A DNA stretch of 64,000 nucleotides from Dimorphilus gyrociliatus (GCA_904063045.1 CAJFCJ010000013.1:1532156-1596155), one strand, 5' to 3'. Shown: positions 1,839 through 21,859, numbered from the stretch's first letter. Numbers and translations: made by a program. The notes: generated by a model from the letters alone, not told the origin.

Positions 1839-3959
1839 ATGGGAAATAATCAAACTACTTTACATATATCTGACTTTCAACCGGCGGAAGATGAGAATAA
1901 GACTTTTGTACCTCACGTTGAAGAACCAATTCCAAATGGGATTTCAAATGATAAACCTATAACGCCTATAATTAAACCTGCGAACTTGAATGGATCTTTA
2001 AAACCCCAAGCTCCTCCTAGAAAGGTTGCTCCTGGTAGGCGGAAAAAGTTGAGAAATAGAATTCCTTTACAACCCATTCAGGAGGAGGAAAATGAACCGG
2101 AACCAGAGCCACTTCCTCCTCGAGCTCCACCAAGGAAGAAAAAATTAGCAAAATTTGACCACTCCCCCCTTCCCTCTCCCAAAAGTAGTCATGAATCAAA
2201 ATTTTTAAGTGACATTGATAAATTAGCAAGAGAGCAAAGTATTCCAGAAGAGCCAGAAGACGATTGGGAAGAAATTGAACCAGGTAAACTTGACGATTAC
2301 AAACCTCGAATACAACAAGAGGAAGAGCCAAAACTTGACATAGAGACTGAGCAAGAAGCCGAGATAGAGTCTGAGAAAGAATCAGACAAAGAGACAGAAC
2401 CAGCGTCACCTCAAGCAAAACCATATAAGAGACAAAGAGAGCCAATAATAGAGAGACCACCATCTTCAATAGATGAAAATGAGTCACCAGAATTCGAAAA
2501 TTACGAAGTATTTGATCCGAAATCATTTAAATTGGAAGAATTACCGAAAGAGAAGACCGTTTGGGAAAAGCTCAAATCCGAATTAATAACTGCCGTTGCT
2601 AGTAGAGTAGAATTCGACGAAAGTCTTATTCCTAAAAAATCGAAGAAACCAGAAAAATTCAAAGAAGATATTATTAAAGCCGTAAAAGAAAGAGAAAATC
2701 GAAGAAAGAAGGGAGGTTTACATATGAGAAACGTTGGTCCACTTCCTGTTTGCACTACTGTTACGGAAGATGATGTTACAATTAAACCTCCGGCAAGAAG
2801 AAAAAAAAACAAGTTAAAAAAAAAGATAAAATCCATGAAAAATAATGTTGTAAAAGCCTTTGACTCCTTCTCGCGTTCCAAAAGACCTAAGAGTATTCAT
2901 ATTATGGAATTGAAGAATAACGAATTTGATTCTCCACCAACTTCCCCGGTAAGAGTTCATCATGTAGAGGAAATACCATTCTTTGCCTATGATGAAAAAG
3001 ATGAAGAGGTTATACGATTACCGAAATCTGAGAAAGTTTTTGTAACTGATGACGGAAGGACTATTCGCTCCAGCGAGGTTACTAAACTTAAGAGAAAATC
3101 TTCTGTGAAAGAAGACAAAAAGATAAAAGACGATTCTTTAAGTTCTGTGGAAAACGAAAGAAAAGAACTTATGTCAGCTGAACTTGAATTTAAGACTGTT
3201 AGAAGCTCAACGAGTGCGTCAGATTCGATAAAAGGTAGAGTACTACTGTCGTCGCCTGATAGAGACTCAAACGAATTAGGGGAATTTGAATTAGCTACTG
3301 AAAAGGATTTAGATAAATTTCATAATAGCGACGTTGACGATGATATGGCCTTATACGTAGTAGCTCCCGAGCATAATCCATGGAGCTCGTCTTCAAAGGA
3401 AAATTCTCCTCGCTCAGAAAAGAATGAGATGTCTAAGAGAAGTTCACCTCGTTCTGAGACATCATCTCCTTATCCTGCATCAAATATCTCTTCAAATAAC
3501 TATCAAATGCCCAATTTTTTTATGCCAACTGCTTTTTATCCCTACCCTGGACCTGGCAACTATTCTGCATGGACCCAACCCCCTTGGGTCTATCCTGAAC
3601 CTTCTCCTAGTGTTACAACCGCAACGTCACCTAGGGAATCAGTTCCAGCAGACGATATCGATCAACAAAATGCTGAGGACGAATTAACAAGGCGGCGACG
3701 CCTCCTTTTAGCACCAATTGGATATAGGCCTGTAAAATTTAACCCAACCGCCAGTTTAAAATCGGTAACATTACCGAATTTCGTCAGTCCAAAGCCCTAT
3801 TCAACACCATCCATTAACGAAAAACCCGAAGAACAAGAAGAAAAAGAAGAAAAAAAAGAAAAAGAAGAGAGAGAAGAGCAAGAAGAAGAAGAAAAAGAAG
3901 AAAAAAAAGAAAAAGAGGAAAAAGAGGAAGAAAATGAAAATATTTCTACTGCAAAATGA
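1839..3959 (+). CDS. Uncharacterised 706-aa low-complexity, probably disordered protein (single-exon ORF)
   Basis: A 2.1-kb uninterrupted ORF in ~70% AT DNA, rich in P/E/S/K. It starts MGNNQT and ends in an EEQEEKEEKKEKEE repeat. I recognise no domain. Confidence 0.8.
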   Translation: MGNNQTTLHISDFQPAEDENKTFVPHVEEPIPNGISNDKPITPIIKPANLNGSLKPQAPPRKVAPGRRKKLRNRIPLQPIQEEENEPEPEPLPPRAPPRKKKLAKFDHSPLPSPKSSHESKFLSDIDKLAREQSIPEEPEDDWEEIEPGKLDDYKPRIQQEEEPKLDIETEQEAEIESEKESDKETEPASPQAKPYKRQREPIIERPPSSIDENESPEFENYEVFDPKSFKLEELPKEKTVWEKLKSELITAVASRVEFDESLIPKKSKKPEKFKEDIIKAVKERENRRKKGGLHMRNVGPLPVCTTVTEDDVTIKPPARRKKNKLKKKIKSMKNNVVKAFDSFSRSKRPKSIHIMELKNNEFDSPPTSPVRVHHVEEIPFFAYDEKDEEVIRLPKSEKVFVTDDGRTIRSSEVTKLKRKSSVKEDKKIKDDSLSSVENERKELMSAELEFKTVRSSTSASDSIKGRVLLSSPDRDSNELGEFELATEKDLDKFHNSDVDDDMALYVVAPEHNPWSSSSKENSPRSEKNEMSKRSSPRSETSSPYPASNISSNNYQMPNFFMPTAFYPYPGPGNYSAWTQPPWVYPEPSPSVTTATSPRESVPADDIDQQNAEDELTRRRRLLLAPIGYRPVKFNPTASLKSVTLPNFVSPKPYSTPSINEKPEEQEEKEEKKEKEEREEQEEEEKEEKKEKEEKEEENENISTAK

Positions 3960-4952: not shown

Positions 4953-7900
4953 TCAAGTTTTCTTTTCCGTTTCAATTGTAAAAGTAGCTTTTAGCTCTTG
5001 GGTAGTTTCGCTCATCTTCCGTTTTAAATATCTTAGAATGTGAATTTTCGATTTAACACTTTCTCGTTTAGCTTGTAAATGAGCATCGTTCAGTATAGAC
5101 ATAAGAAAATTTAGACAAATAACAATATTAACAAGTACAAAACTGGAATAGAATATATGCCTATAAGGGACCTTATATTTATCTAATTCTCTCATAATGG
5201 GAGAAGAGAGTGTTGCCAAACAAATTGTATAAATTGACGAAATCATAGTAGAGAACGATTCTATATATGTGACAAACATTAAATAAGCAAAGTGAGAGTG
5301 AGCTACTAGGCTTATGAAAAAAATCAAAGATATAGACACCAAGGATTTCGAAGATAATACAATGGTCCTGTACAAGAGAATAATTGTACGATTAAACTGT
5401 AATATGTATAGAATCTTTAAGCAGGAAATCGATGTCATAAAAGCCAGAATATAAGTAAATGACTCATTTACAATAGCCAAATGTTGCATATCTACGAAAT
5501 CATCTTTAAGGGAATCTTTAACTTTTCTTCTTAATACTAATTTGGTTATAAATAAGCCTAAACCGGCTAAACACAGAATATTGTTTGTAATGCCAGTTAT
5601 GTTCCATAAGTTTGTAAAATATTTCATCTTTGTCTTCTTAATCTTTAAAATATTCCCCCAAAAATCATATAGTATTAGTAAAACAAACAACACTTGACAA
5701 ACCAGTATGAAAACACCATAGTCAGAATTATACGGATAAAGGTCAATAATAGCAATATGATTCCATGCGTTTATTGAAAGATCCATACTCTGTTCAATTA
5801 CAATTGTTATATGAACAAATAGATTTGAATTTGGATTGAATAGTGTAGATTCTATAATAACAGCTCTAGTACGAGCGTCTAACCAGTCATTACTCGGTTG
5901 AATAGGCGTATTATGTTCAAAAATGTAACCTCCCGACGGATAACTATTTCTTTTCGCAACAGTTATTACGTCGTTACCCTCGATATATTTCATCGGATTA
6001 GGCATATATTTGGGCAATTTTTTATCTCTAATCGTTGTTTTATCTATGTTACCGCTGTCTAAATCGTATGAACAATTTTTAATAACATGCTCCAATTGTT
6101 TGCAAGGCTCTGTAGAAACTCTTAACTGACGCCATCTGATGGAGCCAACTCTGAACATATTCCCATTAAAACAACTGTAACGCTTCTCTCTCCAATGTAA
6201 AGGCGTTCCATTATAGTCTTCTGCATCAAACATGGACGGAAGGAACGATTTATTAGCCCATATATAGACGTCTTTTATCTTTGAAATACTATCAAGATTT
6301 TTAATAAATCCATTTCGAACAGTTTCGCCAATTCTAAAACTACTCAAAGGAACTTGTTTGTAACTTATAAAGAACAATAAAAATACATATATTAACGCCG
6401 TTATTATATTAAATATGGCATTTTCGGCCTTCTTATCCTGTTTTAGATTTATATAATTATCGATCATGTGCTCTAAAGACGGCTTTGGAACTCCACTACT
6501 TGTATTTCGTACTAAAATATGAAAAACAGACATTTCATCAAGTAAACAAACTCTGTTTGTAAAGAAAAAATTATTTTAACAAACAAACCTCTAAGATGTA
6601 GATATTCTGAACAAATTTCGGTGGCAACTCTCTCATTTTCAACATGCTGAAGGAATTCTTTATCGTCTATCTCTGAATCGGATTTTTTAAAGATGAAAGA
6701 TAAGATAAACGCCAAGGCAAAAACCTAAAATGTTAAATTCAATAAAGTTTTAATAAATAAGGAATTGTTTGTTTTGATTGGTTGTTGTCAAACCTTTAAC
6801 GGTTGTATTAGTAGAACGGATTGAGAAAAGCTAACTAGCATTGAGGTTAGCCACTCTTCCGATTTCTCCTTTCCCCATTCAAGTGAATATAATAGAACAA
6901 AGAAACAAGACGTCGATACCGATAAGAATATTAGCAGCCAAGCCACAAATATCAAGAAAGAAGGAAGTAACTTCTTTTCTTTAGAGTTAGGATTCCGGCT
7001 ACATTTCCTAAATATAGTTACAATAAGAAGGTTAACGGGAACAACAACCAGACCCGACATGGCCCCAATCCAGAGCTGTTGCAAAGAAAATTTTAAGGGC
7101 CCGAATTTAATAACGCTATCGGCACTCTCATCTTTTGTTGTTCTATAAAACATAGCTGAAGCTAGCATAGATGTTGTTATCAATGATAAGCAGCAGGAAG
7201 CCCTTTGTAACCGGTTGAAAACACTTCTTGTAGGTCTTGACAAAACACTGATCCATAGATGATCGTCTGTAAGTTTTCTTCTTAACCACATTGGCCATAG
7301 CCTAGAAGATTTTAGAATCTCCTTTCCCTCTATTGTTGATACGTATAAGCAGGGATTAGTCTCAGTCAACCAAGAACTAACGTAAAAATAGTGCTTATTC
7401 ATCGTTGAAATATCGACGACAATTATCTCTTCTAGAAGCAACGAATCATATTTATTATTATCATCTGGATTAATCCATATCTGTAAATTCGTTGGTTTAC
7501 CCAAACTCTGATTAGTGGTCATGTGATAATGATAGATGTTCGATGGTCTTAATTCTTGACGGTATCCATCATACAACGTTCTCACGTGAGAACTTCCCTC
7601 ATTACCCTGAATTCTGAATCTAATAACGGATTTCGTACCCGAGTTCTTCTTATACCCAATTCTTACAATAAGGGCGTAATGATGAGTATCGAATGCCGAA
7701 TTATCTAACAAACTCCTCATAGACCATTTAATTTCGTCGCTTTTATCGAGCTTTCTAAGAATAAATAAAGATATCCAAAATAGTACCAGAATAGAAATAA
7801 TAAACGCCAATACAACGATATTATCCCCAATCGTCTTAAATTTTCCAAATACCGAACTAAAATCAATAGGATTCGGAGCTACTATTATATTTGACCCAAA

Positions 7901-10900
7901 AAATGTCAGATGGTTACATTCGCATAGAACCTGACTATTATCTTCCTGATTATCCGACACCTATTAGCGTATAAGATTTTATTTACTCTTTCAATTAACT
8001 AATTAATACTATGTTAAATCACACAACGTACTCGGCATCCTTCATCTTTCCATTCTCTATCTGTAGTACTCCAGAACATACACGTCAGTTTTTCAATACT
8101 AATACCATATTCCATATAGGATATTTGATTTTCTTGGAAATAATAATAATATATAAGAAAAGTACATACAAAGTATATTTTTACAAAAGAATTTCTAAAT
8201 ATAGGCTCAATTAAGAAGGGAATACTTACTAGCTTTAACTCCAATATAGCAAGTACCATTTCCGACTACTGGAATGACCTGATTAAATCCGTTTTTGTTT
8301 GACGGCAGAAAATATAAGGAATCGTACTTTTCACTTGTAGGTTTTTCGTTCATTCTTACATAGATAATTAAGGGTTCTTTCCTCTGCTTTGGTACTAATT
8401 TCAAATTGATGGCTCTAGTTGGATAGGCATACGAAACGTTATGAGAAATAATATTAGTTTCCCTCTTATCTAAATCGTATGCCTTCATTCTATAAAAGAT
8501 ATCTCTCTTCTTCTTCATTTTATCCACTTTTAAAATTATATTTTCGGTTAGGTTCTTAACGTAAATTTGTCTTCTTGAAGAGTCAAAAAGTTTTATCCCC
8601 AATATTCCAGAATTTATCAATTTTCCATTATCAATTCCCCAGGAGATTGGATTTTCTTTTGAGCTTATAATCTAAAGAGAATATGTTTTTTTCTTTAAAA
8701 TATAAAACCGTTATGTAACTTTCTCCCTTTCTTACCTGTAAAGTGACATCTTTCTCCTTATAGCCTCTAAGTAGGTTGGAAGCTACCGATGGAAACACAA
8801 CTCTCGCATCCCCGTTCATATAGGTCGACATATATAACGATACTTTAGATATCTTCTTTATTTTCATATTCCAATTGTCGTTTCCAAGTTCGATTGTTTC
8901 TTCATTAGGCATTTGAAAGTTGGATAATACCGACGTTACTATATCCCCCGATTGAATTGTTGTAGTTAAAATAATTTCAGCCTATATAGAATTATTTAAA
9001 ATATGAATAAATTATAATAATTAATTATTTAAATTAAATTACAATTTTTCTTTCGTAATCGTATATTTTCCGTTGTTTTTGTTCAATTTCTTTCAAGAGT
9101 TTTTCTTTCTCCTTAGGCGGTAGGTCCGGTAGATTAGTACTCAACGGCACTGACAGATAACTCTTCTCTACGCACTTTGCTATTATTTTCGATATTTCTG
9201 ATGTGTTTTTTACAATAATACAGTAAATTATAGGACTATAAATGATATCTGCAAAAACCTTTGGCTGTAGTTAGAGCGTCTTCGAAAATATCATCATTAA
9301 TAGTTGATAGTTTTGTTGCCATTTTAAGTAACAAATCCGACGTTTCTCTCTAATAAAAGTAATAAAAAGGTAGAAAAAAAAATTTGTCATCAATTGATTT
9401 CGTTTACCGCTGAATCGGATGAAATTTCATTCGTTTCATATATTAATTGATTTAAAGTTGACGCTCCCTGCCTCAAAGCTGAACTAGTTTCCAACCATAT
9501 AGACGTATTCGAAAATGTTTCAATTAGATCTTTTCGAAGTTGTTTTCTATCGGTTATATTTAAATTATTATTCGGAGAACAAGGAGGTTTGTAGTTAAGG
9601 TGACCGGCGATAGCATTTTGTATTCGTAAGTTGGCTTGGAAATTCTTAGAAAGGGTAGAAAATTTTAATTCGCTACTACTCCCTTTAATAAGCGAATGTA
9701 TTTCCTGTAAACCAGCTGTAAATGGTTGTACGTGGGCTATTAAAAATACTTCTTTAAAAGCATCGTACGAATCTATTATTTTAACTTTTATCTCCGTATT
9801 AGGATTAACTGGTAAATGCATAGGTGGAGTTGAACTTTCTTCCGAAGTATGAAGTAAAATCCAATCTGAATTTTGCTTAAGAAAAGTTTGATAAACTAGT
9901 TTTCTATTTTGAAAGAAGTCATCGGCAGGACTTCTAGTTAATTGTAAACCTTCATCAGCCCAATTTGAGCACTCAACCTTCAATTTATGAATCAGAGATA
10001 TAACTGAAAATAATACGTTAAGGGTAGTTTTTATATAATTAGAGCAAAGAAATACTGTTACTTTGATTAGGCTCTACTTTACACATTCCATTATAAGGTG
10101 GATAATTGGTTATAAAGGCTTGCTCGATGAATCCATAACTTTGGGAATTGTGCATTGTTAATTTAAGTTTATATTTGTAACCTGAGTGAACAACTCCTCC
10201 TTTTAGAGAAAAATCCTTAGAGTTCTTATCTGATAAAATAAAAAAGACATTATATTTTTGTTTAATTGTTGCTCTATTTCTCTTTCTCTCTTCATTAATC
10301 TCTTACCGGTGACAAACTTGTCATCAATATTTATACGATGTGTACCGTTTTCAAACTCGCCGAATAATTCCCATTTATATTGCCAAACGCTGTTTACAGG
10401 ACAATTTAAGCATTCTGAAGCATAAGTTAGACGATTTGAAGGATTCATTTTTCTTTTACAATTAATAAGACATTTCAGAGTAATGGATGGAATGAATGCG
10501 GCATCCATCACTACCATTGATTGTTTAACAGAAGTTTTCCTTGATCCTTGTGTCACTTCTACTTGAATATCGATTGTTCCTTGTTGATCGGCTATTGTTT
10601 CTAAACATCCAAAATTACATACAGATCTCTTCTTTCTTCTACTGGAGGCTAGAGTTTGCTTTCCCAAAATAGTCCATCGTTTATCATTTTTACGCTTCCA
10701 TGTAAACATGAATTCATTAACGCTACTACCATCGGAATCGACAACCGAAGAAGAGGCATTTATATATAGGACGTCGTTCCATCTAACTGCACGACCACTT
10801 CCTCCAGATAGTTTTATGTCTAGGGGTGTTGGTAAAACTTTAATATATTTTCTAGCTGTATTCTCTACTCCTTCGAATTCAGTGATCTTTACATTAACCT

Positions 10901-13900
10901 CAAAAAAGATGATACCATAGGGAAGAACATTAGACGGTATATTCAACCAAGGTAAAGTGGTATTAATCTTAAATAATTCCACGCCATCCTTAAAGACTTT
11001 CCACTTAATATCTAAAGGATAGGCTTCTGTACAACGACTTTCTATGATTGTTTGTAAAGATAGTTTTTCCGATCTAAATACAACTAAGGCCTCGTCCAAA
11101 GTTTTACCAATACCACTAATGTCTACAAATGGTTTCTGACATTCTATAACTCTTACTGATAAACGTTTGGTTATTCTGGAAACGCTATTAAAGCCATAAA
11201 CGAAAATATTATATAAGCCAGCTTTTCTCCAAATATGATTATGAGTTAATTTATTCCTCTCGTAATTAAACTCCTTTAAAATAGCATTAGCGTCATTCTG
11301 TCTACAAGATTCTCTACCATATATGTATCTTGGACCCGAATCGTCAAAATCCCATATAAGACAGGGCTCTAATCCGAGATTTGAATAGCTAAATTGAAAT
11401 TGAAGTGGCGATCCGACTAAAGGCGTATTCATTAATTGAAGTTTTATCCCTTCAATCCTCTCTTCAATGCTAAACGCTAACCATTTACTAACAGAACAGA
11501 AATTATTCTGAAATTTAGCAGTGATATTGTATTTTCCTTGATTTTTGAATATTTTCTCAAAGATAGCTTGATTTTCTTCCATTTTAATGATATTTTCAAA
11601 ATTATTGTTTATATATATGGCTAAAGTTACGTTAGATCCTTCAGTGATGTTTAACGTGAACTGAATTAAACTTCCAGGTGTAAAATTTGCCGATTTCAAC
11701 AGGAATAGCGGATTCTTGATACATTCTCCAACTTGGATAATTACATTTCTAGTTATAGAGCTAATCTTATTACTAATAATCGCTTTAATATCATATTCTC
11801 TTTCGTATTTATACGAATGTTTAATTGTATAATTATTCGATATGTTTATATTAATATTATTAAATTCGTACAAACTACCATCTCCAGTTTGTAATTTAAT
11901 AGTTGCATCTTCTATAGATATTGATGAATTTTTCGTATAGAACTCAAAAGTAGCAGCTTCCCTAAACGAATTTAAATTATTTACGTCCATAAAAACTTCT
12001 TTAATTCTATCTTGAATGAAAATAGATTTCTCTACAGTCTTTTCTCCTAGTATATTCGTAACTTTAAGGGATAAATTAGTTTGTCCCAGATTATGGAATC
12101 TATAATTTAACCAATAATGTTTCTTATCGCTGTTGTCTCCTTTGTAAACGAATGTTTTAATATTTTTGATAAATTGAGATTTTAGTAGAGCTGTAAAATT
12201 TGATCCTTTTTCAATTATGACGCTTATATTAACAGTCTCTCCTTTTGGAAAATAATTCCCAATGAGTTTTATTGATATTGATTCAATTTCTCTAATTCTA
12301 ATTAATTCAATTGATTCGGATAGGAAGGATAAATGATTCCACGTAGTAAAATTATAAATATGTGAACCAACTTGCGACGGTGCCTGTATATCAATCTTAC
12401 TAGATTTATTACAATTTTCATTAATATTCCAAATAGAAATGTCTTTATACGTTAATCGACAAGACAGAGGATTTCCATCACTTATATTCCATCTTATTAT
12501 TGCTCTATCATCACTAAGAGAGCTATAAATAGTTTTAATAACTTCAATTTTCTTAATTAATTCTTCAACAAATAGGTTTTCGATAATTTTATCGATATCA
12601 GTAAATAAATTAAACGCTCGCAATCCTATCTTATAAACGCCAATTCTATTATAGGTAAAATTTATTGGAATTATATTATTTGTTGTAGCGTTTCTATAAG
12701 TGACGCTTTCTCTTTCGCCAAAATAATCGATTGATAATGATACATTAGAACCATCGGTTATTTGGCAAGATATTGTATAAGTTTGATTAAGAATTAGAGA
12801 TTTTGTCGGTAGAGAGAATGATAGAGAGGAAATTCCTTGTCCAACTTGAACAGTTTTAGACGTTGATGAATTACCAACTGGATTAGACGTTTGGATTGAT
12901 ATCTTATAATATCCATCTTCTTGATAAATATGGCTAATTTTGTAATTATATTCATCAATTTTCTCGACTGCGCTGGAGGCTTTTTCATCCCCGAATAACA
13001 CTATTATTTCCATATCTGAGGGAAATGCGTACAAGCTAGGAAAAGCCAGAAATATTTCGACAGGCATCCAATGATAAGAGACATTATCAGCCATTATATT
13101 AAAGTCAATAACGTCGTTAAACGTTTGGAAATATATAGATTTGCTGGCGTTACCTAAAGAATTCCAACAATTTATCGTTAACCTATAATACCCTGGCTGA
13201 GGTCCTTGGATCGAAAATTTCATTTCATAATCTTTACCATCCTCTATACGGAATGCAGTCGGAATTTTAAGAGTAGAATTCGTTAATATTTCAACATTAA
13301 TATTAATTCCGAATTTAAAGCTTAAAGTGCAATTTACGGTTTCATTCGTCTTAAATAGGGCTTTTGGTAATTGTAGATTGAGACCTTCAATCCTTTTTGT
13401 AACTGTTAAATTCTTTGAAAACGTTATAAGGTTGCTCACTTTATTGTCAATGAATAATTTAAATTCTGGACGGTATGACAGTAAATAACTACTGGCATTT
13501 ACTGAAAAATGAGTATCGTTCTCTTTTTCAACAAAAACTGGCATATTATCAATATAGGCTGTAGCGTTTATTGGATAACCTTGACTTATTTTCCAACGTA
13601 TTATTTTAGAATCTGTTAAATCGAAAATAAATGGTCCTATCGGTTGAAAATCTTGAATTTCTTTTTGAATTTCAACAGTTGTATTATACTTTGATGTAAC
13701 AATTCCAAAATTATTTGATACTACTAAAGTAATATTAAATATTCCTATTGGATTATTTTGAAAATAGTATTGAAAATATCCATTTACAAGACCATTATGG
13801 GATTTTATTTTCATTATTGAGCCTAAAAACACTCGAGATTTAACATTACTTCCATCTGTAATTCGTATACCGATATTTATCGTATCGGACGTTTTAGCTA

Positions 13901-16900
13901 TTAAAGGCGTCACCTGATCTATAGAAATATTTCCAATAGGCGTTCCAATTCGTATAATTTCATCGTTTATTATCTGCTTAGTCGAAACTCTATTAGACAT
14001 TTCCGCCTTAAAATAGTAAAAACCATCTTGATTAATTGGTGTACAAGTTAATTTCTCATAATTAAATTCATTTATAAAGGAAGTTTGGCAAATGTCGAAC
14101 GATGGAGAATCGAATTTCTTATATTGTAAAATAACTGTTACATTTGTAGCTAGATTATCGGATGTTAAATTGACATTTATCCCTTTTTGATAATGGGTAA
14201 CATTAAAAGCATCCAAAGAGGCATTCCCCAAAGGAATTTGAATAAAGATATATTCACTAAGAGCGTTAATAGAAGATAAATCATTTCTGGCACTTCCGTT
14301 GATTAAATAATAACCGGGGGAGGAGAAATTTGTTTGATACTTATTGATCATTTCAACTTGATCTCCAGGAATAAATTTACTAATTGAATATGATTCGAAA
14401 GAAATATCTTGCCATACATTTGAACCAGTTAAATTAATAAAAACGTCAAAAGTTTCATTAGTTTTGTAATAGGATCCGTTAGAATATATTCTGAAATAAC
14501 TTATCTTCCTTTCAATCCTTGCAGTAGCATTAACGTATGCTGTTGAATAATTATTTTTGGCGTATATATCTATTATATAGCTATCAGTTTCATTCATAAA
14601 ATTATCGAAAAGATAAAAATTATCCCATGTTTTTACTATAAAACTCTCATTTACATGTAATGAATATTCAATTAAATTCCCTGATTCAACTTTCCAACTA
14701 ATATTCTTCGGGTCATTTATGTCCATTAACCAAAATGGTTGAATTGTAAGATTCTTTATTGTTTCAATTATGGAAATGTTTAACGAAACTTCCTCCTTTG
14801 ATATTTTATTATTGCAGATCAACTTTAATTCGTTTAGTCCTCTTTTCGTAAAATTTTCAACGTATGTTGTGATTTTTGTTAAATTCTTTACAAACATACT
14901 TCCCTGGAGAATGTTATTAATAAATATTGAACAATTTGCCATAGTTCCACCCCCAATTGCAGAGTATGTGAACGTTTGCGTCGAATTAAATTCAAATGTC
15001 GTTGGACCTTGAATTGTTAAATTTCTAATCAACTCTCTAGGAGTGATAACCTGTATTGTTTGTCTTAGAATTACATCATTCTTTTCATTTCTAGCCAGAC
15101 TTTCAATTATAAATTCGCCAGTAATTGAATATTTATATTCAAAATCACGAATATATGTAAAATGGATGACGTCATTCGTTAAATTAATTCTAAACATGGC
15201 AAAAGTATTTTCGTTAGTTGTCAAGTTGAACGTAAACGTCTCGTTAACATTTATAAAAATTTCATTGTCAATTGAGTAGTGATCGTTGACAGTTGCGTTA
15301 AAATTGATTATCCTCTCCGGATTAATGAATGGTAGAAAGGCGCAAGTTCTGTATACTGTTGAATAAGATCCATTGCAGACGCTATAATTAATTAAAGTTA
15401 GATTGGAACAATAACAAGAGTTGGTATCGCTTAGTAAACTCTTTTCACTATTTATCTTGCAGTTTCTCCTACATTCCAATGAATTATTTACTTGTCCCAT
15501 CAAAGTCCAATCTGAAGATATCGTTGACAAACAACCAATCTCATAATGGATTTCATTATTAACATTCTCAATCAATTCACTCTTCCCATTCAATATTTCC
15601 AATTCATCAATTTCAAATTCTGATGATCCATCACCAATGATGATATCTTGAACTGTATAAAGTTTATCATCTAATTTCGGTATTGGCGTTAACCTTTCCA
15701 AAAGTAAACCGTCAACGTAAACGCTAAGATCGTCTTGTAAATTCCACGATAAGAATAAATGGAAATAGACGCCGAACTTTACGCGATAAATTGAAGTCCA
15801 AACCTTGTTTGAAGATATTATCTGATAAAAAAACGAAAACATTTATAATAATTTATAGTTTTTGCTGTATATTGCTGTATTTTAGATAGAACCTCAATTT
15901 TGCAGTATTTTCTTAAAGGTAAACTTTCGTTAAAAATATCACAAACGAAGTTTACTAAACTAGAATTTAAGATAACAGTTTTATTATAGTTTTCATCCAA
16001 TTTTACAAAGACGGATAAGGAAAAACCAGAGCATAACGTAATATCTCTAAAGCAAGTATCTTTCAGTAAATTATCAATTTTAAACTGCCCATTTAATGAA
16101 AATTTAGTGGCATCTTTTGAAAATAATCCCGATTTAACCAACAGTCCAGACGTTGAGTTTGTACCAGACGTCTGTTGGCCATTAAGAAATCCATATGAAT
16201 TGTCCATACTAAATGATAAATTCCTATTCCATATTAATCCCTTTTCTAAAAAAGAAAGAGAATAGACATTTTAATTGAACAAGATGATCTAATTATTCTT
16301 TATAGTTTACCATATGTATCATTTATAATTCGATAATTTAAAGAGCTTTCATCAAATTTCAATTCGTCTATGATTAAATTTCCTCCAATTCGAAGTGGAG
16401 ATGGTTGATGAGCACTTCCGCTAGATATTATTTTTGATAAATTTCCATTTGTTATTAAGATATTGTTTATAAACAAGACAATTGAATCATTATTATAGCT
16501 AAGAGCAATATGATTCCACTCTAAAATATTAAATGTCGTCTGAATTAATAGCGTTTCAGTTTCTTCTCGAATCTTTATAATTATCATCTTATCATTTCTG
16601 TTATAAGAGAAGATAACCGAATTGGATATTTCTAATAGGAGATTCTCGGTTGAAGTTGTCTGTCTTAAATTAATCCAGAATGATAAGGTAAAACCTTCGA
16701 AACACCAAGCAATTGTTGATAAGCATTCTGTTGAATATTTTACAAAAGTTTCTGTTGTTTCATTAACTAAAATTGCTTTTCCAATAAGGCCGTCTACTAA
16801 TTTACCAGAATCCTTCCATTTAATAGGATAAGTTACATTATCCATTGGAAAGCTATAGCTACGCCTATATTGACTGGATAACAGTTTGGATACACTTTGA

Positions 16901-19900
16901 TTTACGGAAGTTGTAAAAAGATGTAAATCATCAACTCCTAATTGATTACCATTGAAAGTTAATATTGAAGTAAAATCGTTATTAGTACTGTTTGTAACGT
17001 AGGAAGAGTTCACTAATCTTCCATTAACTAAAACTTCTACCATTGTAGAATTTAAGGTTATGAATAAATGATGCCAACTACCTTTTGACGTATGGAAATA
17101 TAGTATATCATTAAAATATATAGATGATAGAGTAACTGTTGAATCACCATCGTAATTCAATTTAATATTCTTTCCTAATTGAAAGAATTGACTTGCAGTC
17201 TCCTCCATATTGAATTTATACCAGAAAGCAATCGTAAAACCATTTGGACAAAATGATAAACTAACTGGACAAGTTACTCTATGTCCCATTAAAAGTTCAT
17301 CTACTTGAAGACCATTTTCAATGGGTTCGTTAATCTGTTTCAAATTGGTACCGTTCCAATAAGTTGGTAAAGCTGTTAAATTATCAAAAGAAAAATGGAA
17401 ATAATCGATTTGTAAGCTTTGGTATATTTTTAATCTGTTTTCTTTAGTATAAATAACATTTTGTGAAAAGTAAAATTCGTCCATGTAGAAAGAATTATCT
17501 GTTAAATTCCTACCAATGCCTAATCGATTGAAGGAACAACCGTATATAACACAACTGTGTGTTTTATCAGTCATCGTCTTATATTCTCCATTCATTGTTA
17601 TCGTATCAATATTATTTAAATATAATTTTGAACCAAGAATCGGATGCCAGGAAACCATAATATGAATCCAATTATCAATTGATGTTTCAATAGAATTCTC
17701 CCAATAGTTACCTTCTTGATAAACGGCAAAGATAATTTTTCCAGATTTATACTCAATTTGAAATCCATCCGGATTTAGATTTAACATTATTGTCTGCTGA
17801 TTATATATTTTCTGGGGATATTTTACCCAAAAAGCTAGTGAAAAACCCATAATACAATCGTTAATATTCTTGAAACATTTGACATTCCTTTTCGTTGAAT
17901 CAATAGTCAAACCATTACTATCTACTTTCCAACAAGTATGCCCTTCATCTTCAACTTTTATAAAATTTGTTGGATGATATATAAAACGCTGATCCATATT
18001 GTTTGTATCGGAATCGTCTAAAGGAAAATAAAAACCCAACGGACCATCGTCTATCCCTATAAGAGGACTTACTTTCCAAGCAAAACCAGTTGTAATACTA
18101 TGAGATTCTTGCACTCTAACGGCTTTAAAAGGTACCTCACTATTCGAAATACTTTCCTCTTTTGTATGATCAAAATAAACTGAACCCTCATCAGTCGTAT
18201 TTGAATTAATGCCATCGCAATTGCAAGGAGCATTAACGTTTTCACATTCATTCTTATTCCTACAAGGACACGTACCAGCGCTTATAGCTCCCGGTAATTT
18301 TTCCTCTCTTCTACTTATTGTTTCGTAGTAAGTATTTGACAAAGTGTTAAATAATTGAAAATTTTCTAAACACTTTATTGTAAAATATTGTAAAGATTTC
18401 TTTGAAGTGAGAAGAAGATGCTGCACAGCACCTCTAAAGCTGGAGGTAGAATAAAAATCTGAATACTTTATTTCAGTCGTTATGGAAGTCCAATTGTGGC
18501 CAACTGTACTTTCAAGTTCCGTTATAGTTTCTTTCTCTGTAGGAATACTATTGCTTTTAAATGAGAAACCATTTTAATTAGTTAAGAACCTTTATCTTCT
18601 GGAAATTTACATCTGTATTTATAACTTGAAAGCCTAAATATTTCAAATTCTTTAAAATATTCTTCATATCTGAAATCACTACATGTGACTCCAACTGAAA
18701 AAGATAAGAAAGATTGAATGAATCAAATTCCCATTCATTTTCTTACCATAAGTGAAATCAGATTGTCCTCTCTCTCTCTCATTATAATTTCCATCAAAAT
18801 ATAAAAAGAGATCATCTATAGCTGCCTTTCCTTTATCTGAGATTACATTATCGCTATAATCTGCTCCAAATACCATATAACCCTCATCGGAACTTGTCCA
18901 CTCTGTAACCTCATCATAACAGAGAGACCATTGCTTTTTCCTTTGAAGTTCAAATGTGATATTTTCAGCAATTTTAAACGCCGCATTATCAGTAATTACA
19001 GATATTTGAACAAGCAACCATTTATCATATTGAACGGGAGAAGATGCATAACAAACGTTTGTTTTTGATCTGGCAGTTATGTTAATATTTTGATCGGTAC
19101 TCGACACTTTTAGAAAAGTGAAATTTCCATTTCCAACCCAAAAGTGAGTGCCATAAGAAGAGGCGGATAATTTTAACCAAAACGAATAATGAAAGTATGC
19201 ATTTGCACAATATTCAGGATGTGTAAAACAATGTCTATAGTAAGTTGACGAAATAGCATATCCATCGCTTAGATTCAAGTAGTTATGAAACAATACAGAT
19301 CCATAATCCAATTTAGCATTTTCGTATAGTTTAAATTGAACAGGAGGTTGATTTTCATCAATATTCATTAAGTAATTTTTTTTACCCGATACGTAATTAT
19401 ATGAATCAACTGTTTCAAAACTACAAAATGTAACCGTATATGCATAAGTTCTAGCCGTTTCTCCAATAAATTTTGTATCGTTCAAAGGACTTTTCTCACT
19501 TGAGTTCGATACGTAAAGTTTATAGAACATGAAATCATTATGAGAGAATGTATAATTTGTTAGATAGCCAAGAGACTGCTTCAGTGGTTCTGTTCTCTCC
19601 TTATATGTTCTAGGTTTGCATATCTTCTCCTGACCAACTATAAATGAATTGATTCTTACTCTTAAGCCTATGGTTAATTCTTCGTGCGAAAAATGTAAAT
19701 GAAACCATTGGCCTAGTAATACTTCTCTTGAATATTCATAATAACAATACTTGGTTTGTAAACGAATAACAAGCATTTTGTTTAGAATATAGATTCCGTA
19801 GCCGTATTCATCGTCACTATAGCCTCCTCTATCAAAAATAACCCCATCTTCAACAGATCCAATATTCTCTGAAGACATTTTACAAATATATATATATATG

Positions 19901-19919
19901 TACTGTATATATATAAATG

Positions 19920-19963
<44 letters not shown>

Positions 19964-21859
19964 ATAAACCTGATATAAAGAGCCAAACTCCGAGAGAGAT
20001 ACCTTTTGAACAGTATCTGATGTTTTTTAAACAATTGCTGGTATTATATAATTTAATCTGTTCATAAGAATTCTTAACTATTCTGCTTGCAGAATAAAGA
20101 TGAGGTCCTTGGAAGAAAGGTGCACATTCTTGACATGAAACCTTACGTAAAGTTTCTGTACTATTGATTATTGAAAGGTAAGTACTGGTCAGAGAGATTT
20201 TTTCCTCTGTAATAGTTTCTAGAAAGGAGTAAACAAATTTAAATATGGGAAAATGATAAATTACTAGAATATTTTACCAAATCCTTGTTCAGCTGTGTTT
20301 GCATCAAATTTTTTACCGTAGAACTTAAAGCTATCAATCATATACGGAAAGCTTGTATTAGTTCCTATGAACAATAATGAATATAATATATAGTATAAAT
20401 AGATCAATTGTAATTGGAATACCTAAAACAAGATCTAAATTAAAGCTTTCTAATCTATCGCCAAGGTCATCATATTGATGATAAATGCTTTTGTCTTTCA
20501 GTATAAACCGTGTACCTATAAATTCCACTTTGTTTTCGAATGTTTTCTTAGTGAAAATTACATCTTTTAATTAGTCAACTTCTATAATTTATAATTTTTC
20601 CTTAACTTACAGAAAAACCTCCTAGTATGTGATCAAATGTTAATATAATCTCAAACCATTCAGGTTTTGATATTTCACCAATTCTATATTTTAGATAATG
20701 CTTCTTTTTAAAGATTATTAGAAAAAGATCGTATGCGTTCTTAGGAGTACCGTTATCTTCTGCTCGATCTATGTATATACCGAAACCAGTGAATGCCATA
20801 TTAAAATCTGAATTTCCAAATAGCCTCATTATTTCATGAGGAAAGATGGTAAAATCGACAACTTTAAACCAAAAATGGAGGGTAAACCCATCCGGACACC
20901 AAACTTCTTTGTCTTTACCTTGTCCAAAACAGTCAGGGAATGAACCAATATTTAAAACAGCATTTTTCATTTTAATTGCGGAATTTGATTTTCCTTCGGA
21001 AAGCTGCAAGTTGTAGGCAGGAGCCGAGACAAATGGTAATCCACTTAATATTGATCCTTCGTAGATATCATCAAAATTTAAGGTAATAACATTGTCAACA
21101 GGTTTTATTAGAGTATCTTTAAAATTTTCAAAAATATTATTATGAAAGGTAAATGACCTAAGATGAAATAGAGGTTGAATTACCTTGCATATTTAAGACA
21201 TCGCTAAAAGAAAATGATTTATCTCTAATAAATAATTCATCAATTTTAAATGAACCATTACATGTAGATCCAATTCTCAATCTACCTCCAAGCTCTGATG
21301 ATGAGGATGTTGTCTCCTCCTCTGTTATATTACGTAAGTTTGCATTCAACCATAAAAGTTGAAATTTATACTCTCTATTCCATGATCCAGCAACGTGCAT
21401 CCAATTGTTGATACCAGCTTGATCAGGTAAAAGTGTGCTTATCTCAAATTTACTTCCATTTCGAAAAACAGAAAAAGTAATTTTATGTTCATAAGAGTTA
21501 TATCTTATCTGAAAACCCATAGATGAAGCAGATTCATCTACAGTTGATAAGATTTCTAATGAAGAACCAGTTACATTTATCAAATACACCCAGAAACCAA
21601 ACGCAATACCATTTTCACAACTGTCCGGGTTAGTTATACAATTATCTCCCAATGACCAATTTCCAACAACTGGCAAACTTTCATTAAAGTTTACAAGCAA
21701 ACTATTTCCTTTTTTGCCAAGTGAACTACTGCTATAATTCGTTTGAATAGGTAAACTATTTGGCCCATTTGGAATGTCAAACGACCAATACCAGGATTTT
21801 CCATTGCAGTAGTAGATTGAAAAGAGAAAGGAGATTAAAAGAAAGTCTATCAAACGCAT
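4953..21859 (-). CDS. PKD1-like: Giant polycystin-1-like receptor/channel subunit (~5,200 aa, ~19 exons): signal peptide, 8 LamG-like repeats, CASPR-like module, WSC, ~15 degenerate PKD repeats, REJ/GAIN, GPS, PLAT, polycystin TOP and channel domains
   Basis: Signal peptide MRLIDFLLISFLFSIYYCNG. REJ-type motifs LKCLINC and PPYNGMCKVEP. GPS CMFWSTTDREWKDEGCRV...CECNHLTFFG. PLAT HYALIVRIGYKKNSGT. TOP RWRQLRV. Six-TM channel block in ORF 4953-6533. The junctions I checked join in phase (6790/6735, 6591/6513, ~10287, ~15820, 18537-18652, 19875-20620, 21180/21115). Confidence 0.92.
19921..19962. repeat. Compound (AT)n(GA)n microsatellite in a polycystin intron
   Basis: Directly visible. It explains the spurious SLSLSIYIYIY start of ORF 18679-20034. 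Confidence 0.95.

Follow-up and report, generated by a model that had tools for sequence, protein, structure and literature searches.

The minus strand of a 64,000-nucleotide stretch of the Dimorphilus gyrociliatus genome (GCA_904063045.1 CAJFCJ010000013.1:1532156-1596155; the whole stretch is called the window here) is predicted to carry, at positions 21859-4953, one intact multi-exon gene of approximately 5,100-5,200 codons. This gene appears to encode a giant polycystin-1-type membrane receptor with an N-terminal arm of about 1,900 residues that holds eight laminin G-like (LamG) domains. From the N- to the C-terminus its parts are a signal peptide, four LamG domains, a Cys-rich module, four further LamG domains, a WSC-like domain, a PKD stalk, REJ, GPS, a first transmembrane helix (TM1), PLAT and a polycystin channel-like transmembrane (TM) region. 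It is a new domain-architecture variant of the known polycystin-1 receptor family and no new kind of system. The best explanation of the evidence as a whole combines one LamG-polycystin gene with a putative role in a sensory channel complex, and we hold it to be quite probable.

The LamG arm and the polycystin core in one gene

The window is AT-rich (GC about 30%). Between 21859 and 4953 its minus strand carries long open frames of 236, 196, 454, 757, 150, 1,879, 227, 390 and 540 codons, along with smaller ones; every exon of the LamG-polycystin gene is open, and in the region of the LamG arm neighbouring exon pairs can be joined in frame via canonical GT-AG introns of 58-101 nt. Exon borders are predictions from the sequence, several of them marked as tentative. 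All searches and structure predictions were carried out exon by exon, and protein length is given as the sum of exon lengths. This sum, about 5,100-5,200 residues, is consistent with the length of about 5,200 residues proposed in an earlier reading of the window made without database searches (the sequence-only reading).

The arm and the core meet within LamG repeat 8, which is interrupted by a 71-nt intron (15892-15822; GT..AG, phase 0) whose splice sites can be read directly from the sequence. Exon 16245-15893 ends on a complete codon followed by GT, and a pyrimidine run and an AG precede the restart at 15821. The first 80 residues from 15821 form the second half of LamG repeat 8, and further along the same 1,879-codon exon passes through the WSC-like domain and the PKD repeats into REJ. 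Arm and core are accordingly read as a single coding chain. The LamG exons do not make up a separate gene, in agreement with the sequence-only reading, which had joined them to the polycystin, and the part order is the same in three paralogues from this genome.

Two genes could nonetheless have been read as one, namely a secreted multi-LamG protein (21859 to about 15900) and a separate WSC-PKD-REJ polycystin whose start would be the ATG at 15842. This ATG is indeed the first codon of the 1,879-codon open frame, and the linkage of the exons is predicted from sequence. However, no signal peptide is found just after the ATG, and from 15821 onward the frame encodes the C-terminal half of a LamG domain (hhalign 92.8%); the N-terminal half of this domain is found 71 nt upstream, on the other side of a phase-0 GT-AG intron. 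The end of exon 16245-15893 is kept in all three paralogues, and there is no space at this point for a terminator plus a promoter. A division into two genes is thus very improbable.

The eight LamG repeats and the Cys-rich module

The sequence-only reading had noted a Cys/Trp signature recurring eight times in tandem across in-phase exons. All eight signatures were located on the minus strand, at 21640, 20931, 20033, 19230, 17877, 17271, 16725 and 16054, the eighth being degenerate (without the Gly and without the Trp). A loose regular expression for the signature gave 10 matches in the six frames of the window, seven of them within this 6-kb same-strand stretch. Since the signatures stand in three reading frames and can be linked by short GT-AG introns, "in-phase" holds in the sense of joinable exons, not of a single frame. 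The word "tandem" likewise needs amending: there are eight LamG-type domains, but their layout is four plus four instead of strictly tandem, with a Cys-rich module of about 170 residues standing between repeats 4 and 5.

Pfam Laminin_G_3 was matched above its gathering cut-off by exon 21161-21859 (repeat 1; E 3.8e-7) and by three stretches in the 757-codon exon 16303-18573 (repeats 5-7; E 5.6e-25). The exon pieces with repeats 2, 3, 4 and 8 gave no Pfam match, and for this reason paralogue alignments were compared by hhalign, each exon being aligned with its counterparts from the three same-genome paralogues. Repeats 5, 6 and 7 scored 94.7-98.1% among themselves. Repeat 7 was in turn matched by repeat 1 (98.3%), by the N-terminal third of repeat 2 (96.7%) and by repeat 4 (96.2% over 123 columns), while its C-terminal half was matched by the C-terminal half of repeat 8 (15821-15580; 92.8%). 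The C-terminal part of repeat 3 matched repeat 5 (94.5%). In the middle and at the C-terminal end of repeat 2 the usual LamG motifs are visible in the paralogue pieces. The motif that follows the signal peptide in repeat 1 is kept in the paralogues, as is the signature of repeat 3, where the position of the intron was taken from the paralogue alignment. This predicted 101-nt intron (19869-19969, minus strand) consists mostly of TC and TA microsatellite, and the L006 paralogue is intronless there.

A profile search of PDB sequences with repeats 3 and 4 gave no match. The exon with repeat 4 was modelled by AlphaFold at a mean pLDDT of 49.5 overall, and repeat 4 itself was all-beta with pLDDT 64-87. 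Foldseek aligned this repeat 4 model with neurexin LNS, agrin, perlecan and laminin LG domains and with the jelly rolls of clostridial neurotoxin HCN domains (E 2e-5 to 2e-4). There were 168 PDB matches at E <=0.001, and concanavalin-like (ConA-like) folds were present in all of the approximately 40 matches listed among the top 50 ranks. Together, Pfam on repeats 1, 5, 6 and 7, hhalign on repeats 2, 3, 4 and the C-terminal half of 8, and the fold model of repeat 4 bear out the LamG/ConA-like nature proposed for these repeats, and eight LamG-type domains are therefore a fair count, with the first half of repeat 8 the least certain. Domains of the LamG/ConA-like type often bind carbohydrate.

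The Cys-rich module (18534-18043) reads C-P-C ... C ... C-N-C-D-G. The C-P-C, the single C and the C-N-C-x-G are invariant, and the module is kept both in the paralogues and in three relatives from other assemblies (P0001-P0003, described below). Searches of Pfam and of PDB sequences with the module gave no match, and hhalign shows no kinship between it and the LamG repeats.

The WSC-like domain

A WSC-like domain had been proposed at about 15545-15345. The stretch is there, with six Cys invariant among the four paralogous genes and a predicted fold of WSC type, but Pfam WSC (PF01822) was blank. An AlphaFold model built from the four-paralogue alignment of this part has a core pLDDT of 78-91. 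Its top Foldseek match is the WSC domain of yeast Wsc1 (7pz2; E 0.015, probability 1.0, TM-score 0.50-0.54), an entry whose title describes a mechanosensor domain and which is also the top VIA-align match (Z 7.6 over 76 residues, root-mean-square deviation 3.2). The next matches, at Z 5.9-6.2, are chains of Kremen1, glyoxal oxidase and copper oxidase, which we take to be WSC-bearing, and PAN/apple domains rank below them. Eight cysteines belong to the WSC consensus, whereas six invariant ones are found here. As the structural scores are middling, the family call is only probable, and the part at 15548-15333 is best described as probably a divergent WSC/PAN-type domain.

The polycystin core and family assignment

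The stalk matches Pfam PKD (E 8.7e-29). A search of the stalk with its own profile found eight repeats at an independent E-value (i-E) <0.01 and three weaker ones, with a period of about 90 residues and space for approximately 14. Pfam REJ was matched on consecutive exons at E 4.9e-32 (profile positions 3-261) and E 7.7e-10 (profile positions 328-449). The GPS motif is divided between two exons, with C..W..W..GC in one and C-x-C-N-H-L-T-F-F-G at the start of the next (7960-6791), directly before TM1; Pfam GPS gave a partial motif at E 0.0033. The intact GPS with its HLT that had been described earlier can thus be read in the exon beginning at 7960. Pfam PLAT (E 1.8e-7) follows the first TM helix, and the GPS-PLAT exon aligns with human polycystin-1 (6a70_B, residues 32-331; E 1.6e-28). 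The last exon matches Pfam PKD_channel (E 2.1e-29) and Polycystin_dom (E 7.7e-20), and among PDB chains PKD2L1 (E 1.6e-34), PKD2 (approximately 1e-31) and PKD1L3 (4.7e-17), so that its channel domain is nearer to PKD2 and PKD2L1 than to the PKD1L3 chain. Pfam 7tm_2 was not matched, the membrane part being PLAT plus PKD_channel.

Vertebrate PKD1 has N-terminal LRR, C-type lectin and LDL-A domains. No Pfam match to LRR, C-type lectin or LDL-A was found in any N-terminal exon of the present gene at E up to 10. By its predicted architecture, the gene is a member of the PKD1 family but not an orthologue of polycystin-1 (PC1). Two other searches were uninformative: a word-index protein search with the 1,879-residue exon, whole and as its REJ part, gave no match at E <=0.001, the index being too insensitive for such divergent AT-rich sequence, and the ESM Atlas gave scores of <=0.76 for the same exon.

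Several points weigh against the architecture set out above. Pfam fails on four of the eight LamG repeats, and even hhalign gives the N-terminal half of repeat 8 a weak LamG score (58%). Pfam WSC was matched neither in this gene nor in its three paralogues at E up to 10. Finally, the exon borders are self-predicted from the DNA, and each search was limited to single exons.

Relatives in this and other genomes

The assembly searched for paralogues and REJ loci comprises 77.9 Mb in 349 contigs. Three paralogues of the 757-codon LamG exon, at 26-29% identity, were found in tandem on contig C4, and these three genes share with the present one the signal peptide, the signatures, the exon ends, the WSC-like domain and the part order. 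The present gene stands alone on another contig and has diverged furthest among the four LamG-bearing paralogues. REJ gave 44 exon-level matches in this genome, at about 22 loci (e.g., G000:C136:2364-3812, C7:3003038-3004426 and C20:1319486-1320964). Laminin_G_3 adjoins REJ at four of these loci only, the present one and the three C4 genes; the other 18 or so are without nearby Laminin_G_3. The gene is no singleton but the fourth member of a LamG-bearing subfamily inside the far larger PKD1/REJ family of this genome.

Laminin_G_3 also occurs in this genome away from REJ. At locus L005 (G000:C29:252563-256282), there are two or more Laminin_G_3 exons, with open frames of 318 and 561 residues, that are weakly like repeat 5 (E 3e-6), and no REJ lies nearby. 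At G000:C20:1778705-1779142 and G000:C21:514573-515082, Laminin_G_3 lies inside open frames of 2,334 and 2,639 residues away from the REJ loci, which represent other giant LamG genes.

Among 1.84 billion representative proteins, an exhaustive HMMER search turned up no more than four close relatives (P0001-P0004), all of them open reading frames (ORFs) from Logan assemblies. P0001, a 762-residue ORF, matches the whole exon at 37% identity, is closest to the present gene and looks like its orthologue. P0002 and P0003 have 28% and 26% identity, respectively, and P0004 is a fragment. On the aligned residues, the sequences nearest to P0002 and P0003 appear to be those of L008 and L007, two of the paralogues; with P0001 nearest to the present gene, this pattern suggests that the duplication predates at least one speciation. 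The shared layout of the three paralogues, together with ORFs at 26-37% identity in other assemblies, indicates purifying selection on the LamG arm. That the gene is a decaying or non-functional paralogue of the C4 tandem array, as its solitary position on a different contig and its divergence from the other three might suggest, is the least probable of all the alternatives, given that all exons are open (including those of 1,879, 757, 540 and 390 codons), that the invariant Cys and Trp positions are retained, and that another assembly holds an apparent orthologue at 37% identity over the full exon.

The other 52 HMMER matches are generic LamG proteins. Fourteen matches were scanned (P0001-P0008 and six longer ones), and neither REJ nor the channel domain was found in them. 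The long LamG matches were accordingly rejected as polycystins, none having REJ or PKD_channel; they are bacterial surface proteins, a laminin/neurexin-like protein, an EGF-LamG protein and a fusion of LamG with an amiloride-sensitive sodium channel (ASC). P0007 (1,163 residues) has an ASC N-terminus and three Laminin_G_3 domains and is in this way another ion channel with a LamG arm. A metagenome scan with the LamG alignment gave two weak generic LamG loci (L009 and L010) without PKD or REJ similarity.

Layout of the locus

The features of the gene are collected in Table 1. Two further features, the downstream neighbours of the gene, were seen on the plus strand of the window. A 706-residue low-complexity protein rich in Pro, Glu and Lys is encoded at 1839-3959, and the polycystin gene ends about 1 kb away from it, tail to tail. 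At 25-285, an exon with an H-P-D-D-E motif resembles a PIG-L-type de-N-acetylase.

Table 1. Predicted features of the LamG-polycystin gene, in order from the N-terminus (positions in the window).
Feature	Position	Strand	Evidence and remarks
Exon 1: start codon, signal peptide, LamG repeat 1	21184..21859	-	Hydrophobic ORF N-terminus; Laminin_G_3 E 3.8e-7; donor at 21184 tentative
LamG repeat 2, tentative exons 21116-20611, 20546-20423, 20364-20278	20278..21116	-	Signature 20931; introns of 64 and 58 nt
LamG repeat 3, exon 20218-19970, 101-nt intron and start of exon 19868-18747	19560..20218	-	Signature 20033
LamG repeat 4	18747..19559	-	Signature 19230; hhalign, AlphaFold/Foldseek
Mini-exon (18669-18611, tentative) and Cys-rich module (18534-18043)	18043..18669	-	Paralogue conservation
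LamG repeats 5, 6 and 7, single exon (about 18042-17404, 17403-16834, 16833-16311)	16311..18042	-	Signatures 17877, 17271, 16725; Laminin_G_3
LamG repeat 8, split by intron 15892-15822	15580..16245	-	Signature 16054; hhalign
WSC-like (PAN/apple-type) domain, probable	15333..15548	-	Predicted fold; six invariant Cys
PKD (Ig-like) repeat stalk	11142..15300	-	Pfam PKD E 8.7e-29
REJ, end of 1,879-codon exon and following exons	9393..11045	-	Pfam REJ
GPS (split between exons near 8265-8017 and 7960-), TM1, PLAT, TM2-5	6791..8265	-	Pfam; human polycystin-1 match
Polycystin (TOP) domain, 6-TM channel-like domain, stop codon	4953..6575	-	Pfam; PDB matches

Comparison with known systems

With the polycystin-1 family (PKD1, PKD1L1-3, PKDREJ, sea-urchin REJ, and the cnidarian, planarian and mollusc PKD1-like proteins) the predicted protein shares a WSC-like domain, PKD, REJ, a GPS with HLT, PLAT after TM1, TOP and a channel-like C-terminus, all in the canonical order. 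It differs in its 1,900-residue arm of eight LamG domains and a Cys-rich module, and in the lack of LRR, C-type lectin and LDL-A matches. Coral and sea-anemone REJ proteins are described with WSC, PKD, REJ, GPS, PLAT and TOP and no LamG (PMC4890752). Core domains and no LamG are likewise described for Nematostella polycystin-1 (PMC8846589), abalone TRPP1-like proteins (PMC12980990) and planarian PKD homologues (PMC11448475), and "laminin G" is nowhere mentioned for sea-urchin SpREJ1-10 (PMC1934368). A limited literature search found no paper on a polycystin or REJ protein with a LamG arm, and no such protein was among the non-family HMMER matches scanned; in this material the arm did not prove to be already common in invertebrate polycystins.

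The best functional analogy is PKD1-1 of Platynereis dumerilii, an annelid PKD1-family member with a function in sensory cilia. This protein is described as defining a family of invertebrate proteins that are paralogues of PC1 and PKD1L1, and PKD1-1 and PKD2-1 are required in ciliated collar-receptor neurons for the hydrodynamic startle response (PMC6294549). The text of that paper names no LamG and gives no domain list, and the two proteins are thus compared by description only.

The LG arrays of neurexin, Caspr (CNTNAP) and laminin/agrin resemble the arm in having serial LamG/LNS jelly rolls interrupted by a small Cys-rich module. Unlike them, the repeats here fit Laminin_G_3 and not Laminin_G_1 or Laminin_G_2, there are no EGF domains, and the arm is carried on a predicted 11-TM polycystin core rather than on a single-pass tail. 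It is conceivable, if rather doubtful, that the LamG(4)-Cys-rich-LamG(4) arm derives by capture from an adhesion gene of neurexin/Caspr type, in which case the polycystin channel complex in a small clade of annelids would be gated through a ligand interaction of synaptic-adhesion type. Such a receptor would belong to a class not known elsewhere and would serve as a natural experiment in the way polycystin ectodomains determine the stimulus that the channel detects.

Adhesion GPCRs of the ADGRD type, to which the sequence-only reading had likened the signature, carry a LamG/pentraxin-like ligand domain upstream of an autoproteolytic GPS. The present protein is like them in placing LamG/pentraxin-like domains ahead of the GPS, but it has eight LamG domains where they have one, and its membrane part is of polycystin type, without 7TM_2.

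Proposed function and significance

By analogy, we infer a function that includes the ciliary or adhesion mechanosensor role and the GPS cleavage put forward in the sequence-only reading. The protein would be cut at the GPS and its halves would stay non-covalently joined, as in characterised PKD1-family proteins. Together with PKD2-like subunits it would then form a cation-channel complex at a sensory membrane, with the cilia of sensory neurons as the likeliest site. The LamG arm, held off the membrane by the PKD stalk, may bind a glycan or matrix ligand, and either ligand binding or mechanical pull on the tethered arm could be passed through the REJ/GAIN region to the channel. This analogy is drawn because Platynereis PKD1-1 and PKD2-1 act in ciliated collar-receptor neurons and because the Wsc1 domain has been described as a mechanosensor.

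The main rival to a sensory role accepts the same gene and architecture but makes the product a gamete-recognition receptor of the sea-urchin REJ type, whose LamG arm would bind glycans of the egg coat or reproductive tract and thereby cause ion flux in sperm. Fast evolution is typical of reproductive proteins, and LamG/ConA-like domains are commonly carbohydrate-binding. The large REJ expansion in this genome (about 22 loci) and the fast divergence of the arm, in which paralogues are 26-29% identical and the nearest outside ORF reaches 36-37%, therefore make a gamete role plausible. The family itself takes its name from the sperm receptor for egg jelly of the sea urchin, an animal with ten SpREJ paralogues (PMC1934368). 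However, the low identity may simply reflect old duplications, and among annelid polycystin-1-like genes function has been tested for one only, which is neuronal (PMC6294549). We thus regard gamete recognition as unlikely, and a LamG-polycystin acting in a sensory channel complex as the preferred explanation.

What polycystin-1-type receptors sense is still a matter of debate, and the answer is believed to lie in their large, variable ectodomains. In the present gene the usual N-terminal modules appear to be replaced by eight lectin-fold domains, which points to a different ligand, probably a glycan or matrix component. The genome of D. gyrociliatus further offers a comparison within one species, between four LamG-bearing genes and about 18 other REJ loci without nearby Laminin_G_3. 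The predicted architecture shows how the ectodomains of the PKD1 family may be reshaped by domain shuffling in small invertebrate lineages.

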